DNA of 64,000 nt, taken from Adineta vaga. Lineage: Eukaryota > Animalia > Rotifera. The translations under genes and the position numbers were made by a program. Positions 8,480-37,351 of the stretch are shown in pieces. Within the stretch, counting starts at the first letter, position 1, and each line of letters starts with the position of its first letter. The notes under the pieces are model-generated. The model saw only the letters and a program-made list of their open reading frames with translations, was not told the origin of the DNA and made no database searches. Location: contig CP075493.1 of assembly GCA_021613535.1 (NCBI GenBank), positions 2,790,001 through 2,854,000 of the forward strand, written 5' to 3'.

Positions 8480-10511
8480 ATGTCGTCTTCAGGACAACAA
8501 TTCAATAACTCAAATAATGCACAATCACAAAATACAAATAATAACATGTTAGATGATTATGAAGATGATCCATCATTAACACAAAATACTTCGTATGTTA
8601 TACAAACGTTTGGAACATTTTTCTAGTTGACTTATTTACGACTTTTTAAATAACAACAGATTGAGGGGAAAAAACTAGTTTCTAAATATATCGTTGATAC
8701 TTTCCTCGACTCAAGGAGTATTGTTATGAACTAATAACTTTCGACAGTTAAAACATTCATTACTTAAATTGCGATAGTATAATACGATCTACATGATGAA
8801 TGGTTGAAATTTATTGAAAATTCTCCAGATGTAATATCTATTTGACAAAATGTAATCAACATTAAAAACAGACTATCATTAGGGAAATGGAATTCTATTT
8901 GAAAATTCTTAAAAACTCGAAATAATTTTAAAAAACACTTGAGAAAACCATCTCATTTCAATAGTTTCACTTCCTAGATTATGATAAATAATTCTTTCAT
9001 TATATTTAAAAAAGAAATTCTACGAGTTCAAATGTAGCGCTATTTTTGTGAAATTCACATATGTTTCTCGAAGAAAAATAAGTGAGTGTAAGTTTGAAGT
9101 CGAGAAATTTTGAGTGCCCTTCCTCTCTCCATTATAGACACAATCCCATTGTAATTAGAACTTCATTATAGGAATAATCCAATTTCAAAATAAAATACTG
9201 GCTATTATCGCAAATAGACTACGTGAGTTCCACATTTTAGTCCTAAAGAGACTGCACTGAAAAGCTTTTTATAGTATCATATTAAGTATAAATATCATCA
9301 TTCGATTGTTGTTCGAGATAAACATATTCCGGAACAATATGTGTCTATACTCGTTCGCGTCAACTATTCAGTTAATGTCGTAAATAGTCTGCAAGTATTT
9401 ATTTGTCTCAAAAAAAAAAAACTTCAAAATAACATTAAATGAGAAGGTTTTCTTCGGATAATTGATTTTCATAGAGGCAAACAACACATGTGCCATTATT
9501 CATGCTATTTCCGATGAGAATTATTAATAAAAAAAACTTGTAATTGTATTTCTTTCTAGTTCTAATTTCAATAATCAAACATCAAATATAAATAATCAGA
9601 ATACGAATCATGCAGCAGAATCAACGTAAGAAAATTTCCTTATTCAAATGAATATGTTTTGAAAATTGATTTAAAGATATTATCCTTTTGCTGGTTATCA
9701 TGGTGAAGGTGAAGTAAATGATCCCGATGCGAATTATCATGGTGAAGATGAAGAAAATGATCAAGATGATGACAATTTAGCCGAAATTGAAGAACATCTT
9801 CAAAATGCACAACTTAATAGTAATGATGATGACTATGAACTTTTTTCGGATGATGTTCAACGTGCATTTGAAAATTATGAAAATGAAGTATGTTAAAAAT
9901 AAGACTATTCCTTTCATTCATAGTTTATCTTATCATAGAATTCAAGACGTTGGCAACGTAGTGATTCGGTAAATATAACTATCTCTATATCATTGTGTTG
10001 TCTTGTTTCAGTGTTAATAGAAAAAAGCGACTTTTTTTTAGACGTGGAATACTTGTTCATCTGAAGAGGTAGTATTCAAATAATTTGCTTTATCAGTTTT
10101 TTTTTCTTTTATTAATAATTTTATATGCAAAAAAAAACCAGCTTTATTAGATCATTTATTCAATATTTATCTTTTTCTTCCTTTTAATAGCAAGATATCA
10201 TGTTTGAAGAAATGCGTGAATGTATGTTCTATATGACACAAGAATACTGTACAGCAGAAATGCCAACTGAATTAGTAATTACGATCAGATTAGTCGCCGG
10301 AGAAATAAATCTATTATCCTAATTATAGGTTGAAATTACTCAAAAAAGTGATTTAAATCCAAATGCCGTAGAATTTTGTCCATCATATCGGATACCGCCA
10401 ACAACAACAACAACAACATCAAGTGATACAATACCAATCATTGTAATGTCATGGACACCCTGTGTAGCACAAAAAGCTGAAGGCAATGCTGACGAGCAAG
10501 AACAAGAATAA
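8480..10511 (+). CDS. PAIP2-like acidic protein with PAM2 (PABP-interacting) motif (7 exons)
   Basis: Spliced ORF with N/Q-rich N-terminus, YPFAGY, a long D/E-rich tract, QDIMFEEMRECMF and PAM2 consensus KSDLNPNAVEFCPS (~10345-10386); ends ...ADEQEQE*. Confidence 0.7.
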
Positions 10512-11074
10512 GATGACCTCTAACTGATTTCCATATGCATGTATTTTATTATTAACAAAAACATGAAGATATAGATATTCTAATAACAAATCCACCTGTG
10601 AGATTGTCCGTTGCTTTCTTCTATTTTTTTTTCTATTCATACCATGTTTCTTTTTTCTTCTGGGTTTTTTCTCTCATTCTTAATTTTCAACAACGGCTGC
10701 AAAAAAAATATTAAACTGTCTATGTGGACTCCGTCTCTTTTTTTATCGAGTAAAGCAAATAAAAAAGAAGAATATTAACGTCTATGACCTTCATTGCTTG
10801 GTTTTTTTCCTTTCTTTGGATGTACTGTCGTGACAGTTTTTTTCTTTCCTATTTCAGATAGTTAAGTCGAATTTCGGCGAAAACAAACCAACGAATTCTT
10901 ATTTATGTTGCTTTTTGGCTTCTAATTGTGTTCGTTCTGAAGGAGTATCTGAATTGTTTTTTCTTTCTTTCAATTTGACGACACTATTTTACATGCTTGA
11001 AAGTCGAATGTCTTTTCCTTTTCTGTTGCTAGATAGATTGTATCTTCTTGTTTTTAAAAACAAAAACGACGTTT

Positions 11075-13534
11075 ATGGCGTCTAATATCGCTCCAAAATC
11101 TTCATGTAAACATTCTTCTGATAAATCTGTTTCACCTGATGTAAGTAACATATCTTTGGATGAAAGTGATGGTTCACTTCAAACAAATGAAATGAATATG
11201 AATGGAAATTCATATGTAAATACACCATCGCCATCATCAATCACATCGTTAAGTTCTCTCGATCGTTCATATAGACGTCGACAAACAAGTTTTAAAAGTA
11301 AGCTAACCAATGACTTGTATGTTAATAAAAAGGTTATTCTTTTTCTTTCTTAGATGATTATCGTTCACATTTACGAAACGTCGTTTTCGAACTGATAAAT
11401 TATTTCAACATACGCATTCACTCAATCGACAATATGTCGTCGCAATGACAAATATACTTTTTCAAATGCAAAAAGAAATCTATAGACTTCGACGACGTAC
11501 AAATCATATTGAGCAAATACTTTCGAAACAATCCAAATCAAGTCAGCCAATCATTCGTATCCCACGATTAACACGAGGTAGAATAAAATATAAAATATAA
11601 GAAAACAGATGATTGTGTTTTTTTTTCCTTTAGATGAACTTTCTACGATATATGTCAATAATAACGAAAACAAAGAAAGAACTGTTTCGGATATTTCTGA
11701 CGAAAATATCGATGGTTTACAATCAATAACAACGAATAGTATCGATTCTCCAAGTAAAGAATTTATTAAAATGAAACAAAAAGATTCATATCTTTGTAAT
11801 AGGTGAACATAAAGATGAGACATCAGGTTCAAAAGGATTCGAAACAAAATATCGTTCAAGTATCGAAATAACTCAACAAGAACAATCATCATCCTCATTA
11901 AATCAGAAAACAAAATATTGCATACGTTGTCAACATGAATTTTCACATCGATCGGGTTATCTACGTCATGTTAAAAATATACATAAAGGAATTGATCCTT
12001 CGATACCTGACAATGTCATTCTATATGAAGTATAATTCAGATTCCATTTTGTGAACGTTTTTTTTCCAACTATTTTTTTTCTAGAATGAGAATCCTCCGA
12101 GTGGTTCAACAAATACCACAATGGATCAACCATCAGGTAAATAGAACACATCGAAATCATTTCATATTTATTGAACTATTTAGGCAATTATTTCGACATG
12201 GACAATGAACAAGTACATTTTCTCGTTAATCAATGGGATATTGGAGAAGGCCGATTACGTCCAAGACCAGCTCCAAAATTAGTTAACGAACCGGCAACCA
12301 AAGTTAAATGTCATATTTGTAATAAATTCTATCGTGCTGAATATATCAAGGTTTGTACTAGGGATAATTTCATAACAGACTGCAAAATTTCAAAAAATAA
12401 CTTTTAACATCTTCCTATTTTAATCAATATTGACGTTCACAATTTGTTAATGTGAATAAATAGTTCTTTCTAACCTGGAAGCCTAGAGGAAAAAACTCAC
12501 AGTAAAATGTTTAGACAGATACAAACAACAATTATATTATATATTTAGAAACATGAAATACGTGCACATCATGAACGAAAATCATCCATTTCATCATCAA
12601 ATGATATTAATGTTATTCCTGATCCTATCGAATTCAATGTTGACAAACCTGTAGATGATATTCAACCAATTTCTAATGAATCACTTACAAATAATACCGA
12701 TCCTCCATCGGCAATCACTATTGCAGAAATGGATATTGATGATATGCCAATTGAATTTCGCGTAAGTTTTATTTGAAATAGAGAATATCTTAGTTAATGA
12801 AATCTTTTATTTAGAAACTTCCAAATAAACTATTTGTTATTGCTACTACGTGTCTTGAACGTTATCAATTAGTATGTATTTGAATATCTAGAATAAACTA
12901 AAAAATGAAAATCTTGTTTATTTAGAATCTTGTCGATGAATTTTTACAAAAATTTTCTTCTCAAGTTTGTCAAACAAATATGATTGATTCTCAAACAACA
13001 CATTTGATAATCAATGATGATGAACATCCATTACGTTCACCATTATCCATGAAATTAATTGAAGCTGTTGCCAATCATTGTTATTGTGTTTCACATCGTT
13101 GGATTGTTGAATGTCTTCGATATGATCGACTTGTTGATGAAGCACGCTTCGAAATTGAAGGTGATAATACCGATTCTCAACCTCATGGTGGACCAAAACG
13201 ATCTCGTTTAGCCGAGAAACGTCATGCTTTATTTGAAAATGTTTGTTTCATGATTAAATGTACAGAAAATAATGATATTAAATTAAGTAATGAACGCTTG
13301 CAAGAATTGATTACTACATGTGGTGGACAAATCATAACCTGTGTAACTCAGAGCTTACTTCGTCAATATACCATTGTTGTTCTTTGTGATAAATTATATG
13401 TTTCTGAACGACGTCATAATTATGATCAATGTCAATTATTAGGTATTCATTTTGTTTCTTCAGATTGGGTACTTGAATCAATTCTTGAATATCAACAAAA
13501 AACACTTTCATTATTTGCAGAAACGCCATTATAA
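11075..13534 (+). CDS. Two C2H2 zinc fingers plus BRCA1/BARD1-type tandem BRCT protein (apparent 1-nt deletion near 11377)
   Basis: C2H2 fingers CIRCQHEFSHRSGYLRHVKNIH and CHICNKFYRAEYIK|KHEIRAH; BRCT1 (TTHLII..SMKLIEAV..VSHRWIVECL), linker FEIEGD..HGGPKRSR, BRCT2 (LFENVCF..LITTCGGQI..VSSDWVLESI). Confidence 0.85.
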
Positions 13535-22432: not shown

Positions 22433-22788
22433 TGCAAAATGAATGCTTGGCAAAAAAAACATTTTCTTCATTGTTTTTTTCGTGTTCCATTGTGAATAAT
22501 CTATGCTTTCGTAGTACGTTCATTGTCTTTGTTTTCTACTTTTCAGTAAGATTGCAATGAATACAAGAAAAATACTTTGATTTCTACTCAATAGTTTTGA
22601 TATATGAAACCTTAATAATGATGACGAGATGCATCTGATAATATAGAAAAGTCTAGAATTTCTCAGACTTTGTAGATCGAAAGAGTTCTCCGAGTAAATT
22701 TGAATGATCTATTAGTCGAAAAATGAATACATCCTATTTGAAATTTCTTCTTTTTGTTTATTTCAACACAAATAATCAAAACAATAGA

Positions 22789-23557
22789 TTAATTCTTTTT
22801 CTTTGTTATTGGAACAATCTGTTGTTGTAATTGTTTTTTAATAAGATCAAATGGACTGCTGGAATATTCAACTGATTGAGAAATCTTATTGAATGTATCA
22901 ATATTAGCTTGACTAGAAGAAGAATTTATTTAAATAAAAATAAAAGAGAATCTTGTTTTTCTCCAGTTTTACCTCTGTCGATTACGTTCAATCTGTGATG
23001 GAATTTGTTTTTGTGTATTTTTCTTTGTTGCCATTGTTAAACGTTGTTCTTCCAAATAGGATTCAATCTGACCAAGAGAATTTTCAAATTCATGTTTCAT
23101 GTCACTAACAATAACAGTTTGTCGACGAGCAGCTCGTTCTTTTGCTTCACGTTTTGATTCATGATCGGCATGAAGACCTGGAAGAAATGAATAGAAAGGT
23201 TAAGTACGAAGTGATCTATCATTGTTAAATTAATGGGTAAATTATTTAACTTACGTTTCAAAAGAAATTGTCGTTTCAATTTGATTTTATCTTTCTTCTT
23301 TGATACGAGTGATTTTATTGTTTTATTAGATATTACACTACGTTTATCGAAATCAATATCATTATGTTCAGCTAATTCTTCATCTTCTAACAAATCATCA
23401 TCATCATCAACATCGTCCATGATCTAAAAATATTCGATTCAATAAAAAAAGAAATCTTTTTATAACAACTTACTTCTTCATCTTCGACTTGTTTCGGTAC
23501 AATTTTTACATCTTGTTTCGATTTACTTTTACTTTTATTAAGACGAAGTTTACCCAT
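22789..23557 (-). CDS. SLX9: Ribosome biogenesis factor SLX9/FAM207A homolog (4 exons)
   Basis: MGKLRLNK..., KKKDKIKLKRQFLLKRL, ERAARRQTVIVSDMK, FNKISQSVEYSSSPFDLIKKQL match the FAM207A/SLX9 pattern (MGK start, KKEKMKLRR, RRATVVVGDL, AYRASPL). Confidence 0.75.
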
Positions 23558-23755
23558 ATTTATCTAAAATACCGATTAGATTAGCAAAAAAGGGGACTAC
23601 AAAGTTACTCTGAAAGCACGGGTATTAGAACATGTCAAAAGATCATCAAATGCAATTTTTTTGATAAAAAAACAAAGAGTATATATAAGTATGTTAATAT
23701 AAATAAAATAAAGTTCTTCTCTTCTTCTTTTTTTTCGTCTGCTATTTGTGTCACA

Positions 23756-26700
23756 TCACATAATTGCGCAAAAGCGTTTTTGAGGATACATTTGATTTTC
23801 ATCGAATTCACCACCATCATAATTGCTAGGTAATTCAGGATGTGGACTTGGAAATACACCACCAATCTCGGGATTTATTGGTGTTGGAGTTACTTCCTCG
23901 TCACTAGGTCCTAACAGATTTGACCATTCACCAAATAAACTATCGACATTTTCATCTTGAAAGAATACATCAGCTTCAGTCTAGAATTAAAACAAACGAA
24001 AAGATCAGATCAATCACTTATATCCTCAATCTAACGTCCTAAAAATATAATCTCATAACTCCTGTTTTCTCGTTTTCACAATTGAATCGAATCTTACCAG
24101 ATCTTCTTTATCTTGATCAAGTTGACTAAAACAAATGCCATAAAACTGTTTTATTTCAATGACAAAAAACGAAGAAAATTGTACATACGCTTGATCTGCT
24201 TGTTTTTCAGTAAACATTCGGAGAAGAAATTTACCTGGTTTATCACTATCATATGTACTCGGTATAATAATATATGAACCAGGTGGTACACGAAAACGTT
24301 TAGTTACTTCTCGTCGATTAATGTATGATCCACTTGCACCAACTCGTTCCAATTGTGACATATAAAACTTTAAATTTCCTTGCTCGATATTTTCTTGTAC
24401 ATCAACATCATCTTTAATCTAAACATGAGAAAAAAAGAGCGCCTAAAAACCATTGTACTTTTTTCTTTTCTCGCAAGAATGACTAAGAATCCATTGTCCA
24501 AAAAACATGATCTACGCGATTTATATCCCATTGTTGAAGACATTCCATTGGAAAAGAAAAGTCAATTACAACTGACAAATCTGATAGAAAATAATGAAAC
24601 AGAAGAAAATCTAATTGATTTTATTCTTGTCTATGAAGAAGAAACATTGTCGGATAATATTAATGATATCAATCCTTTTCAACGTGCACAAAAAGCAATG
24701 AGAAAAAATTTCGAAGCAAATTTACAAAATTACGGACTGATATTAAATTATCGAACGATTCCTTTGAAATATCAACGACAACGAGTTTTCGTTTTAATTA
24801 CAACACCTTTTGAAAAACTACTTGAAATGGCTGAAATTACTCGTAAGTAAAAACTTATCAATCAAACAATTTTATTCTCTCAATTATTTAGGTACTTATT
24901 TACCTTTTGATCGTATTAATCCAATCTTACGACAATTACTCACATATCCATCGTTAACTTATGGTATACCTCAATTATTTCTTCCTAATTCAATCGTCTT
25001 TCAAGAAAATAATCAACGATCATCATATATTTTCTATCCGTATTCAAAACGATTACATAAGAAATTTGCACGATATTTCATTCAATCAAATTCACAAACA
25101 CTTCTCAAAACTCATACATTTACTATTGGTAAAAGAATTTCTAATCTAAATCTTCCTATCTAAACAATATTAGCACAACGAACACGTTTAACTTATGAAA
25201 TTCTTTCTCGTATGCCTCTCTTACCACCTGCAACAAAAAAACATCATTCAACTGTTCTTTCTCCTGATTTACGACGACTTTCTCCATTAAATCTTAGTAC
25301 AACAACATTTCAATCATTAAAAATACATGTACCATCTACAACAACATCACGAGCCAGTTTCAGTTCCATTCCACATGATGACATCATTGAAAAATTAAAT
25401 GATTCTCATCGACATCCAATCTTGAAAATTCTTTCCTCACATCAATACGCTTATGGAATAAATATTCTAATACAAATTGGAATCTATTCAACTGCCTATT
25501 CACCACATGAAGAATATAAGAAAAATTCTCGTGAAAATACTCGAAAATTACTTTATCTCTATTGGGCACAAATAAAACATGTAAACTATTCATTTGAAAG
25601 TTTTCATTCAATGATTTCTCAGTTAGATTTCAGATATTTAAAATTCAACCTATTGAATTAATACGTGCTTATTTTGGTGAAAATATTGCACTCTATTTTG
25701 TTTTTCTTGGATGGTATACATTTATGCTTTTATTACCATCAATTATCGGATGTTTCGTAGTCGTCTACTCAATTATCAATGTCTTTTTCGATATTCCAAC
25801 ATTGGAAACGTGTAATGGTAGGTTAAACATTCTCTACTCTATATACTTAAATGAAATACGATTTGATCAATTTATTTTAACTCATTCAGATTCCATTAAT
25901 CTCATAAAAATAAGTCTGGTATTCACCCTACTCTATTTCGAATGGACAGGCGATATATCTATAAATTTAGCTCATATGAATGTCAATCGAATTATAATCA
26001 AGATTATTTTATCAAATACATTTCAGGTGTCAGTATTAGTATGGAATATCTATGTCCTCAACGTACACGTAAGAAATATGTATCAATTGGAAATGATTGT
26101 CTTACAAAACGATTTAGTACAATATTTGATAATTATTCGACACAAATGTTTGGTGTATTTATGATCTTCTGGATTCTTTGTTTACGACGTTTTTGGCAAC
26201 GTTATTTAGCACGATTTCAATATCAATGGAGTGTTTGTACATATCTATTTTCAATAAATTCTATCCTTTTGTTTAACTAAACATTTCCTTTATTCTAGAT
26301 GAAGATGAACATCGTCATGAATTAACTCGATCATCATTTTTAATTCAATCGACACAAACAAAAATCAATCGTATTAATGGTATCGAAGAACCTTACATTT
26401 CTTTCTGGATTATATCTTTCTCTCGCTATTATCCTTTCTTGTTCTATTACTATTTCTTGGATTATCAACATTAAATATTGTTCTAATGTTATATATTCGT
26501 TTGAAATTATTTCATATATTCCATTCTATTCAAAATGAATTTGTCAAAGAAAATTCATTTATTATTATTAGTATCATAACTTCAACAATTTCCTTAATAA
26601 TTAGTGTGATACTTGATTTTATTTTTGGTTATATTGCTCATCGAATGACAGATTTCGAACGACATAGATATCAATCTGATTTCGAAGCAAGTTTAACTTT

Positions 26701-29700
26701 AAAATTATTCAGTAAGTTTCATATTCAATAGTTTTTCTTGATACATTTCCAATCGATATGATATTTACAATAGTTTTTGCATTTGCTAATTATTATTCTG
26801 TTCCAATCTATATTGCGTTTTTTAAACCATGGATACCATCATTACCAGGAAATCAAATAACGGGCGCAAAATCTTATTTTGTTTTTACAGAAAGATTAGA
26901 ACCATGTAATGATCTAACGGGATGTTCATATGAAATAAGTGTGATTTTATTAATTACATTGATTGGTAAACAATCAGTGAATGCAATCATTGAAATTATA
27001 ACGACAAAATTATCGAATTCGATAACTTATTTTCATTATCATAAGACAGAATTAAATCGACAACGATCATTTACATCATTGACAGGTAATCGAATAGAAG
27101 TTGTCTACGAAATTCGTATGTATAACTTCGATGTAAAGGAAAAAAAACTATTAGTATTAACTTATCCGAAAGATCTGGAATGTAGAAGGACGTGCCAGGG
27201 TGGCCGAGTGGTTAAGGCGTTGGACTTAAGATCCAATTCACAATAGTGAGCATGGGTTCGATCCCCATCCCTGGCAAATAACTTTTTTTTTCTCATTCCG
27301 TTCTGTATAGACATTACTGATGACGTCACTGACGAAGAAACATCTACCAGAGAACGAGAAACATGGGAAACAGATATCTACCTACAACGTCTTGGCCGCT
27401 GGCAATTATATAATGAGTAAAACTCGATCTCTTTTAATATATTTAATCATTGTCTTCTTTTTCTTTTTAAAAAAAGATATATCGAAATCATGGTACAATA
27501 CGGTTTTATTGCAATGTTTTCTATTGCTCTTCCAATTGCACCATTTCTCGCAATGATTAATAATCTATTCGAACTTCGTACAGATGCTAGTAAAATTTTA
27601 TTTGAATTTCGTCGACCATTTGGTGAACTTGCCTATACTCTTGGTATATGGGAGAAAATTTTCGATGCTCTATCCAAACTTGCCATTCTTGCGAATATAC
27701 TTTATCTATTAATCACATGTGATTTAATCTCAAAATTATTCTATATCTATATTGATAAGAATATTAGTTTAAAGAATTATATTAATTTTACATTATCATA
27801 TTTCTATATAAATGATTTGGATGATCATGATGAAATTTATCAAGGAAAACAATTAAATATTACATTTTGTCGGTATCGAGATTTTAGATATGATTATGGT
27901 AAATATTCTCTTTTCGATGAGATCTTATTTTGACTATTACGTTTTTCTTTCTCAAAACAATGTCGATTTGAACCGCATTGGAAAAATTTCTTGTTCCTTA
28001 TTCTATTGAATTCAATCTTTTTTTTAGATTCATCTTATAAATATCAATTAACATCAATCTATTATCAAATTCGAATGATTCAATGGCTATCGATCTTTTT
28101 CTTCGTAATATTTATAATTCTTATCTATTCGTATGTTATTTCATTTGATTTCTTTGTCTCAACTAAACCTTTCGTTTTAGTCTATTGCTGTTCTTTGTTA
28201 ATGATAAAACTCATATAATACGAGATTTACGTCATCAAGAAGAGATTCTTTCTGAACAAGAACTTTGGTCAGATATTCCCAATGTCTTACCTTAAAAACT
28301 CGAAATTGAACATAATCTTCACCTTCCACACCTTGAAGACGACGTTGTCGTGTTTCTTTTTGCATTAAAGCAATAATCATTGTACATAGATTTTCATCAT
28401 CACCATCATCAATAAAATTCAATCGAACTAAATACTGCGGATTTGTCCAATATTTTTCTAACGAGAGAAGAAAAAAACGTATTTGTTTTTCAAAATCAAA
28501 GGAAATTCATTCACTAAATGAAAACCTTTATTCGGTTGACCTGAACCACCGGCAGTCGATCCAGGAATCCATTCACCATGTAGTAATTCTTCATTCCATG
28601 TTAATTTATCATCCTAGAAACCAAAATATGAATAATTTTCAATCAAATAAATCATTTGATATATCAATTCATACTCGAAATAAATTATTCCATGAACAAA
28701 CACCAGCATCATCTTCAGTTGTTCCTAAACTAGCTGGTCCTCGATGACATATATGTAATTGATGAAAATTTGAAAAGAAATCATCAAAACTAATCCAAAA
28801 TTCTCCATCATGTAATGCATGTACACCTATTTCTTGTTTTTCTTCATCACTTATATCGTTCCATGCATCAGAACTAAAATGAAATTGAATATTTTCATTT
28901 TAGTTCATTTGTTTTCATACATACTTATCGGAATATTTCCCATTCCTGAAACAAAAACAAACAAAAAACTAAAATCTTTTTAATATTTATTTCAATTAAC
29001 TAACCATTCTGTTTCATTTCCCCATGGATCTAAATAAAAATACTTTGATTTAAATATAAAATATCTCGAGAGAGAAATTCATTTACTTAAACATCGAATT
29101 AATGTAACACTATTTCCATCAGTTGTAACATCAGCAACTCGTGTAATTGAATAAGCATGACCTAGATGAATCTTTCTTTCGATAAATTCTGTACAAATAA
29201 TTCTCAATTAGACAACCTTTAACAAGACCATTGGGAAGTTTCGCTTCAGTTATTCGTGGATCGGCAGTAATCGAGCATCCAAGCATGGATTTACGCAAAT
29301 AAGCTTGCCAAAGAACACGTTTTATTTGTTCTTTAAAATCTTTTGTTCCTGAAGGATTATTGATATCAAATGCTTCTTCAATTCCACCAGTCATATCAAT
29401 TAATGCATCAGTTGTAAAACCACCTTCCATTGCTTCATATGAACCACATAGTCTTTGAAAAATAAATAAAACAATAAAGAATAGATTTCGTCTATTTAAT
29501 TTAAGATATTCAAATACTTTGCATAGGCTTTTTCTAACAATGGTGCCCACATTTCATTTTTGTCTTTTTTATTTCGACAAAAAACAAGTCGACCATCGGA
29601 ATGAAATGGTAGTTGATCATCAACAACAACATCATACCATTGACCATATAACCAAAAACGAAAATGAAAGATACCTTTCGAAAAAAAAGAAGAAACAAGA

Positions 29701-30178
29701 AGTGAAAAATTTCATAGAAATATGATAAGTTTACCTGCATAGTTAGCTTCATCAAATGATTGATTTGTTGGAACAACACGTTGAAGTAAATCAGGATTGA
29801 GTGTTACAGCACCAGCACCAGCAATAAACCAACAATTACCTAAATAAAATCGATAATTTAATTGAAGAAACGATGAAACTATACCGATTTCGCCTTGATC
29901 AAGATCACCACGTTGAAAACCATCGATAACAAATTGAGGCTTTTGAAAGACTGTCTATTATGAAAAAGAAAACGAGAAATAAGAATGATCATTTGATTGA
30001 ATAAAAAGAATATTTCTACCGTTGGTCGATACCATTTGACATCAGTTAAACGTTTTCCTGTATGATAAATTGATTTATTCGTTGCTGGAAATTCTGAATC
30101 AACGAAAAGATTATTTGCATCATATTTCTTCTTAAGTGTTTCATAAACTTGATTTTTATATGGTCGAATATCACACAT
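23756..30178 (-). CDS. Calpain (CysPc + C2-like domain III, no penta-EF hand) ending in CaaX box CAIM; ~14 exons; 3872-bp intron 24419-28290 hosts the anoctamin gene
   Basis: [21 protein letters not shown] (Cys), GHAYS (His), RCLNPWG (Asn), [52 protein letters not shown]; last exon 23980-23756 ends QKRFCAIM*. Confidence 0.95.
24479..28295 (+). CDS. Anoctamin/TMEM16 family Ca2+-activated scramblase/channel, nested antisense in the calpain intron (~11 exons; apparent 1-nt deletion near 26427)
   Basis: [123 protein letters not shown]. An in-frame upstream ATG exists at 24425. Confidence 0.93.
27194..27276 (+). tRNA. tRNA-Leu (anticodon TAA), inside anoctamin intron 27086-27310
   Basis: GCCAGGG/CCCTGGC acceptor stem, A-box TGGCCGAGTGG, anticodon arm TTGGA-CTTAAGA-TCCAA, long variable arm, GTTCGATCC T-loop, followed by an oligo-T Pol III terminator. 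Confidence 0.97.
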
Positions 30179-37278: not shown

Positions 37279-37351
37279 TGTTCTGTGCAGGTGTCGAACC
37301 TGCGACCTTCTGCGTGTTAAGCAGATGTGATAACCGCTACACCAACAGAAC
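37279..37351 (-). tRNA. tRNA-Val (anticodon AAC)
   Basis: Reverse complement GTTCTGTTGGTGTAGCGGTTATCACATCTGCTTAACACGCAGAAGGTCGCAGGTTCGACACCTGCACAGAACA forms a cloverleaf with arm TCTGC-TTAACAC-GCAGA; T-run downstream. Confidence 0.96.

Follow-up and report, generated by a model that had tools for sequence, protein, structure and literature searches.

Within a 64,000-nucleotide (nt) stretch of the Adineta vaga genome (contig CP075493.1, positions 2,790,001 to 2,854,000 of the forward strand; hereafter the window), three genes lie one inside another. A calpain gene on the minus strand carries a single very long intron, an anoctamin (TMEM16) gene on the plus strand takes up nearly all of that intron, and one intron of the anoctamin in turn holds an intact gene for tRNA-Leu(TAA). 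An earlier reading of the same letters by a model (the original prediction) took this arrangement for a possible interlocked, co-regulated or mutually exclusive Ca2+-responsive membrane module. After comparing the locus with its relatives in other rotifers, we consider it likely that we are looking at an old, structurally locked-in nest of three independent transcription units, not at a Ca2+ module.

To describe the host gene, we searched exon-sized stop-free stretches of the minus strand against Pfam and used a script listing frame-keeping GT...AG pairs for the exon model. The exons cover positions 1-297 of the Peptidase_C2 profile in order (30178..28672). The Calpain_III profile is found in two pieces, with positions 19-75 at 28506..28296 and positions 87-137 at 24418..24200; given that these halves lie on either side of a 3.9-kilobase (kb) gap, domain III is split by the big intron. 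Introns 1-13 measure 65, 45, 60, 65, 55, 57, 59, 51, 61, 68, 3872, 63, and 117 nt and are all GT-AG. As originally described, then, one 3872-nt intron stands among short ones, the others spanning 45-117 nt. The codons of the Cys-His-Asn catalytic triad, likewise said to be intact, are all present: Cys79 (GNCWF; 29834-29832), His244 (GHAYS; 29159-29157), and Asn268 (LNPWG; 29087/29029-29028), the last of which is split by intron 6. The predicted protein is made up of CysPc, a C2-like domain III, and a short acidic tail. We found no penta-EF-hand domain in it; no Pfam profile matched the last exon (74 amino acids, aa), with which the 594-aa protein ends. For this reason the calpain is, as judged from its predicted protein, of the non-classical type, unlike CAPN1/2.

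The guest gene begins with an exon at 24479-24842 and ends with one at 28181-28295. Its introns 1-10 measure 49, 45, 53, 209, 62, 62, 225, 60, 129, and 50 nt, again all GT-AG. Anoct_dimer (PF16178) matches exons 1 and 3, and positions 1-43, 38-78, 117-208, 208-289, and 329-412 of Anoctamin (PF04547) match later exons, so that profile pieces cover 24479..27906. Among solved structures, ANO1 and ANO6 match best (E about 5e-26), and the nearest paralogue is 38% identical in the best-conserved exon. The acidic residues of the Ca2+ site, which the original prediction had called intact, are present and align to the ANO1/ANO6 motifs: Asn/Glu in transmembrane helix 6 (TM6), Glu/Glu in TM7, and Glu/Asp in TM8, with codons at 26980, 26992, 27415/27477, 27484, 27571, and 27583. 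In the sequence as assembled, every one of them lies downstream of a premature stop, to which we return below. Intron 4 (window 25818-26026) varies in length among relatives; A. steineri has about 390 nt, and A. ricciae and the metagenome contig L017 about 50 nt, against 209 nt here. As its sequence occurs once in the genome, it is no obvious repeat insertion.

Among named organisms, the window's genes are closest to those of Adineta ricciae, A. steineri, and Didymodactylos carnosus. Gene order matches that of A. ricciae and of A. steineri over 14 kb: 7tm_1, SLX9, calpain 3' part, anoctamin (on the opposite strand), and calpain 5' part. The same nest is found in the Logan contig L015, in the ENA metagenome contigs L017/L018 and L019, and in the half-locus L021. 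Synteny of the nest in related species, which had been put forward as a check on the original prediction, is thus seen in A. ricciae, A. steineri, L015, L017/L018, L019, and L021. Taken with the conserved splice sites of the host in these related rotifers, the layout argues that the nest is old and not a misassembly. The D. carnosus contig ends 714 nt upstream of exon 12, and this stretch contains neither calpain exon 11 nor the spacing of an ordinary-sized intron; it does contain weak collinear matches, on the correct strand, to the profiles for the first two anoctamin exons (best E 1e-4), with the motif FYPYSK among them. D. carnosus probably carries the nest too, judging from these matches, and the nest would then predate the Adineta-Didymodactylos split. 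Two kinds of candidate were set aside: contig L022 is an unrelated calpain locus, uninformative on the nest, and P0057 and similar longer proteins derive from genomic contigs read through their introns and do not represent spliced transcripts.

Several observations bear on whether the 3872-nt intron is removed to yield one calpain. All orthologues place the host-intron donor GTAAG and the acceptor (T)TAG at one and the same codon boundary, and their introns measure 3395-4089 nt. The closest calpain paralogue (C2, about 14.367 megabases) has a guest-free 73-nt phase-0 intron between RLYR and IKDS, the counterpart of RVFK/IKDD in the window. The joined model, in which FRVFK is followed directly by IKDD (residues 434 and 435), aligns without a gap to four uninterrupted relatives found as word-search matches (P0016, P0018, P0025, and P0026). 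Finally, exon 12 shows 90-99% protein identity across orthologues, including the 19 codons before its first Met. With these four independent lines in agreement, the calpain reads as one gene joined across the 3872-nt intron.

Exon 12 itself is undivided in the window and in the Adineta orthologues; D. carnosus (L014:715-989) and the C2 paralogue (L009:5052-5320) both have an additional intron in it, at a common position. From this distribution, the Adineta calpain orthologue seems to have lost an exon-12 intron. At a distance of about 2.5 kb from the C2 paralogue, the opposite strand carries a further calpain-like exon (L009:2542-2733).

The tRNA-Leu(TAA) gene named in the original prediction was recovered by both ARAGORN and Rfam, with a score of 65.8 bits against RF00005 (gathering score 29). 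The claim that it sits in the one enlarged intron of the anoctamin holds less well, since introns of 209 and 129 nt occur there too. ARAGORN finds an intact tRNA in the same anoctamin intron in six other loci (L011, L012, L013, L017, L018, and L019), and all complete loci have it there. It is also intact at L020:4345-4429, despite a dead host anoctamin. Kept at the same spot across loci, including one with a dead host gene, the tRNA gene appears from this pattern to be under selection. At least five other near-identical tRNA-Leu copies lie on other contigs of the genome. Window positions 27174-27305 match the copies at C4:11591836, C2:14088895, C5:6123075, and C3:13224903 with 94-97% identity over 98-132 nt; as the matches exceed the 85 nt of the tRNA, the tRNA-Leu copies also have part of their flanking sequence in common.

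The metagenome scaffold L020 (2372-5066), which has the same nest and comes from an Adineta-like rotifer, shows what can become of the layers. Its anoctamin has been reduced by the loss of exons 2 and 5-8 and of most of exons 1 and 3; in what remains, exon 4 has a frameshift and exon 9 bears deletions. Calpain exons 12 and 14 are intact there (90% and 84% identity). The comparison indicates that the layers of the nest evolve independently.

The packing of the two protein-coding genes is very tight. Between calpain exon 12 and the anoctamin ATG there are 60 nt (40-66 nt in orthologues), and the anoctamin stop codon lies 5 nt inside exon 11; the same is true of A. ricciae, while in four other taxa it is 9-18 nt inside the intron. 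Given that the coding sequence starts 60 nt from one host exon and ends 5 nt inside the next, we infer that the anoctamin promoter and 3' end must overlap opposite-strand calpain exons, in every orthologue. Because the guest's untranslated ends must overlap host exons, this is strictly a nested-plus-overlapping gene pair. The original prediction was right that the anoctamin fills the calpain intron almost completely, though the coding sequence ends in calpain exon 11. Coordinates are collected in Table 1.

Table 1 Features of the nested locus, in window coordinates.
Feature	Position	Strand	Remarks
Calpain coding sequence, span	23756..30178	-	14 exons, 594 aa; Pfam tiling and GT-AG model with a single open reading frame
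Calpain exons 1-11	28291..30178	-	protease core and first half of domain III; Pfam and splice model
Calpain host intron 11	24419..28290	-	3872 nt, phase 0, GTAAG...TTTAG
Calpain exons 12-14	23756..24418	-	second half of domain III and tail; Pfam and splice model
Anoctamin (TMEM16) coding sequence, span	24479..28295	+	11 exons, ANO1/ANO6-like, about 957 aa if read through
One-base shortfall against five orthologues	26424..26431	+	after Arg codon 26424-26426, in the TM3-encoding exon
Premature stop in shifted frame	26472..26474	+	after 525 codons, 15 codons past the shift
Anoctamin intron 7, tRNA-bearing	27086..27310	+	225 nt
tRNA-Leu(TAA), long variable arm	27193..27277	+	ARAGORN; Rfam RF00005; same strand as anoctamin
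Run of nine T past the tRNA	27283..27291	+	expected RNA polymerase III terminator; function inferred from sequence
Bases common to the end of the anoctamin coding sequence (last codon and stop) and the end of calpain exon 11	28291..28295	.	5 nt

Two further genes adjoin the calpain, as synteny with the annotated loci of A. ricciae and A. steineri indicates: an SLX9 homologue lies directly downstream (window 22750-23560), followed by a 7tm_1 receptor gene. The window also holds a second tRNA gene, tRNA-Val(AAC), on the minus strand (37279-37351).

We propose that these layers work as separate units. The calpain pre-mRNA would be transcribed across the whole locus, and the 3.9-kb phase-0 intron that splits domain III would then be removed. 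The anoctamin would be transcribed from the opposite strand, from a promoter of its own within or beyond the calpain 3' exons, with its 3' end in calpain exon 11. tRNA-Leu(TAA) would be made by RNA polymerase III from its internal promoter, ending at the T run. Antisense interference between the calpain and the anoctamin is possible. As to origin, we infer that the guest entered a short phase-0 intron that already existed, after the calpain and its C2 paralogue diverged and before the sampled bdelloids did; the alternative to this timing is that the guest was lost from the C2 paralogue. The layout may have persisted since then because no simple rearrangement separates the genes without breaking the calpain, and not because two Ca2+-dependent proteins form a unit.

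Three points weigh against this account. The calpain junction from 28291 to 24418 and the anoctamin transcript are known here from sequence alone. A tight antisense overlap conserved over so long a time is also to be expected under selected regulatory coupling. And typical nests consist of short young genes in long introns (PMC5174743), whereas the guest here is a large gene of 11 exons and the intron would otherwise be about 70 nt.

The state of the anoctamin in this assembly calls for separate consideration. The original prediction called it a full multi-exon gene; the exons and the span hold up, but the gene is not full, since the spliced coding sequence is 2873 nt, not a multiple of 3, and reaches a premature stop. 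It consists of 510 open codons to 26426, two stray bases (26427-26428), and then 446 open codons to the stop at 28293-28295. As assembled, no single uninterrupted frame runs through all ten transmembrane helices. In five orthologues (A. ricciae, A. steineri, L015, L017, and L019), there is one extra base at this point and TM3 reads without interruption. An intron from GT(26380) to AG(26549) would restore the frame; we rejected it as the normal form, as it removes the TM3 segment that all orthologues encode in frame.

We lean modestly toward an assembly error or a variant of one haplotype as the source of the missing base. The competing explanation, somewhat less probable in our judgment, is that the anoctamin is a real pseudogene here: a genuine and recent one-base loss would have set it on the way to decay of the kind seen in L020, leaving the calpain with a dead guest and a live tRNA. 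The base is indeed missing relative to five orthologues, with a stop 15 codons on, and L020 documents that such decay in place occurs. Amino-acid changes private to the window are also skewed toward the region after the shift (16 vs 6, compared with 51 vs 83 in other taxa; Fisher p = 0.004). These private changes are, however, few and conservative, and all 956 codons are otherwise open, with intact GT-AG sites and no other defects. A codon-position test for relaxed selection after the shift encountered saturated third positions. The haploid six-chromosome reference was built from nanopore data and polished with short and PacBio reads (PMC8494291), which we count against a real pseudogene. Metagenome contigs were scanned for an exact pattern spanning the frameshift site, with 2 or 3 bases allowed at the gap, and gave no match, and an exact look-up of the 81-aa open reading frame downstream of the shift returned no record in the protein collection; the best identities in that collection are 85-87%. 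The one-base problem in the reference anoctamin sequence calls for comparison with reads.

Could the interlock itself have been selected? It might couple the expression of a Ca2+-activated protease and a Ca2+-activated scramblase or channel used in membrane repair, or make it mutually exclusive, as when an animal dries out and rehydrates. In vertebrate muscle, membrane repair has been tied to both protein families (PMC8155887); every orthologue retains antisense overlap between calpain exons and the ends of the anoctamin; and opposite-strand nests in Drosophila show transcriptional interference (PMC5174743). The physical half of the original prediction stands, given the 60-nt spacing from exon 12 and the 5-nt overlap with exon 11. 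The functional half fares poorly. The closest paralogous calpain has the same intron and no guest. In L020 the anoctamin decayed in place and the calpain and the tRNA persist. The anoctamin frame is broken in this assembly. Calpain_III loci in the genome number at least six and Anoct_dimer loci at least five (this nest included), and no other pair of them is adjacent. Finally, the common "Ca2+" label was noticed after the fact. We therefore regard a selected Ca2+ module as unlikely. A still bolder version, in which the tight antisense packing, with a polymerase III gene at its centre, has been kept since before the bdelloid radiation as a hard-wired switch that makes calpain and anoctamin mutually exclusive in each cell or state (a proteolytic versus a lipid-scrambling response to Ca2+ influx), strikes us as more doubtful again. 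The locus opens no new question on Ca2+ signalling or desiccation.

The C2 region was also considered as a homoeologous copy of the window. We rejected this because the calpain is all that the two regions have in common, which makes the C2 gene a paralogue. The expected homoeologue of chromosome 1 is chromosome 4 (PMC8494291), and no copy of this calpain was found on C4.

If the insertion had broken the calpain into two separate genes, there would be no nesting at all. The public annotations point that way: in A. ricciae the calpain appears as two models of 437 aa and 141 aa flanking the anoctamin (L011:4508-6344 and 10001-10548), and in A. steineri as two of 441 aa and 141 aa (L012:3946-5875 and 10001-11423). 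Each half, however, would have an incomplete domain III. The 19 codons before the annotated Met of the 3' model are conserved like the rest of exon 12 and start exactly at the conserved AG, in phase 0. The join matches the uninterrupted relatives residue for residue, and the paralogue carries an ordinary intron at the same place. Two separate genes are thus highly improbable; the public A. ricciae and A. steineri models cut in two what the evidence presents as one gene. Least credible of all, to the point of being negligible, is a misassembly that wrongly placed the anoctamin between the calpain halves, since independent assemblies of at least five other taxa have the same collinear order over 14 kb.

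How does the nest of independent units compare with known systems? In vertebrates, ANO5/ANO6 and calpains figure in plasma-membrane repair (PMC8155887). The rotifer genes belong to the same protein families, and the Ca2+-site residues and the catalytic triad are present in their sequences. Unlike classical calpains, the rotifer protease is without a penta-EF-hand domain, and the anoctamin frame is broken as assembled; no observation here ties the two rotifer proteins together in function.

A closer parallel is provided by the intronic nests of other animals. About 10% of Drosophila melanogaster genes are protein-coding genes nested in introns, and across animal genomes nesting arises often and is mostly neutral (PMC3814207, PMC5174743). 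As in those nests, one gene lies inside the intron of another, here on the opposite strand, with entry into a pre-existing intron and scope for transcriptional interference. In contrast to the usual short young gene in a long intron, an 11-exon, 3.8-kb guest here makes up approximately the whole intron of a compact host. Its coding sequence reaches 5 nt into a host exon, and the nest is an old one, common to several Adineta lineages and probably to Didymodactylos.

Introns of animal genes commonly hold tRNA and other small RNA genes, and the innermost layer resembles those studied in Caenorhabditis (PMC3342880), in that a polymerase III gene with an internal promoter lies inside an intron of a protein-coding gene. 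In the Caenorhabditis work, comparison of nematodes with flies turned up no RNA gene retained in an orthologous intron (PMC3342880); here, in contrast, every orthologous locus seen still has the tRNA in the same intron, including the one whose anoctamin has decayed. The three-level nest appears to be real and looks like ordinary gene nesting, a known phenomenon. Its value is as a cleanly documented, evolutionarily old example in a compact animal genome, in which a large guest amounts to the whole host intron, shares bases with a host exon, and belongs to a set of layers that appear to live and die independently.

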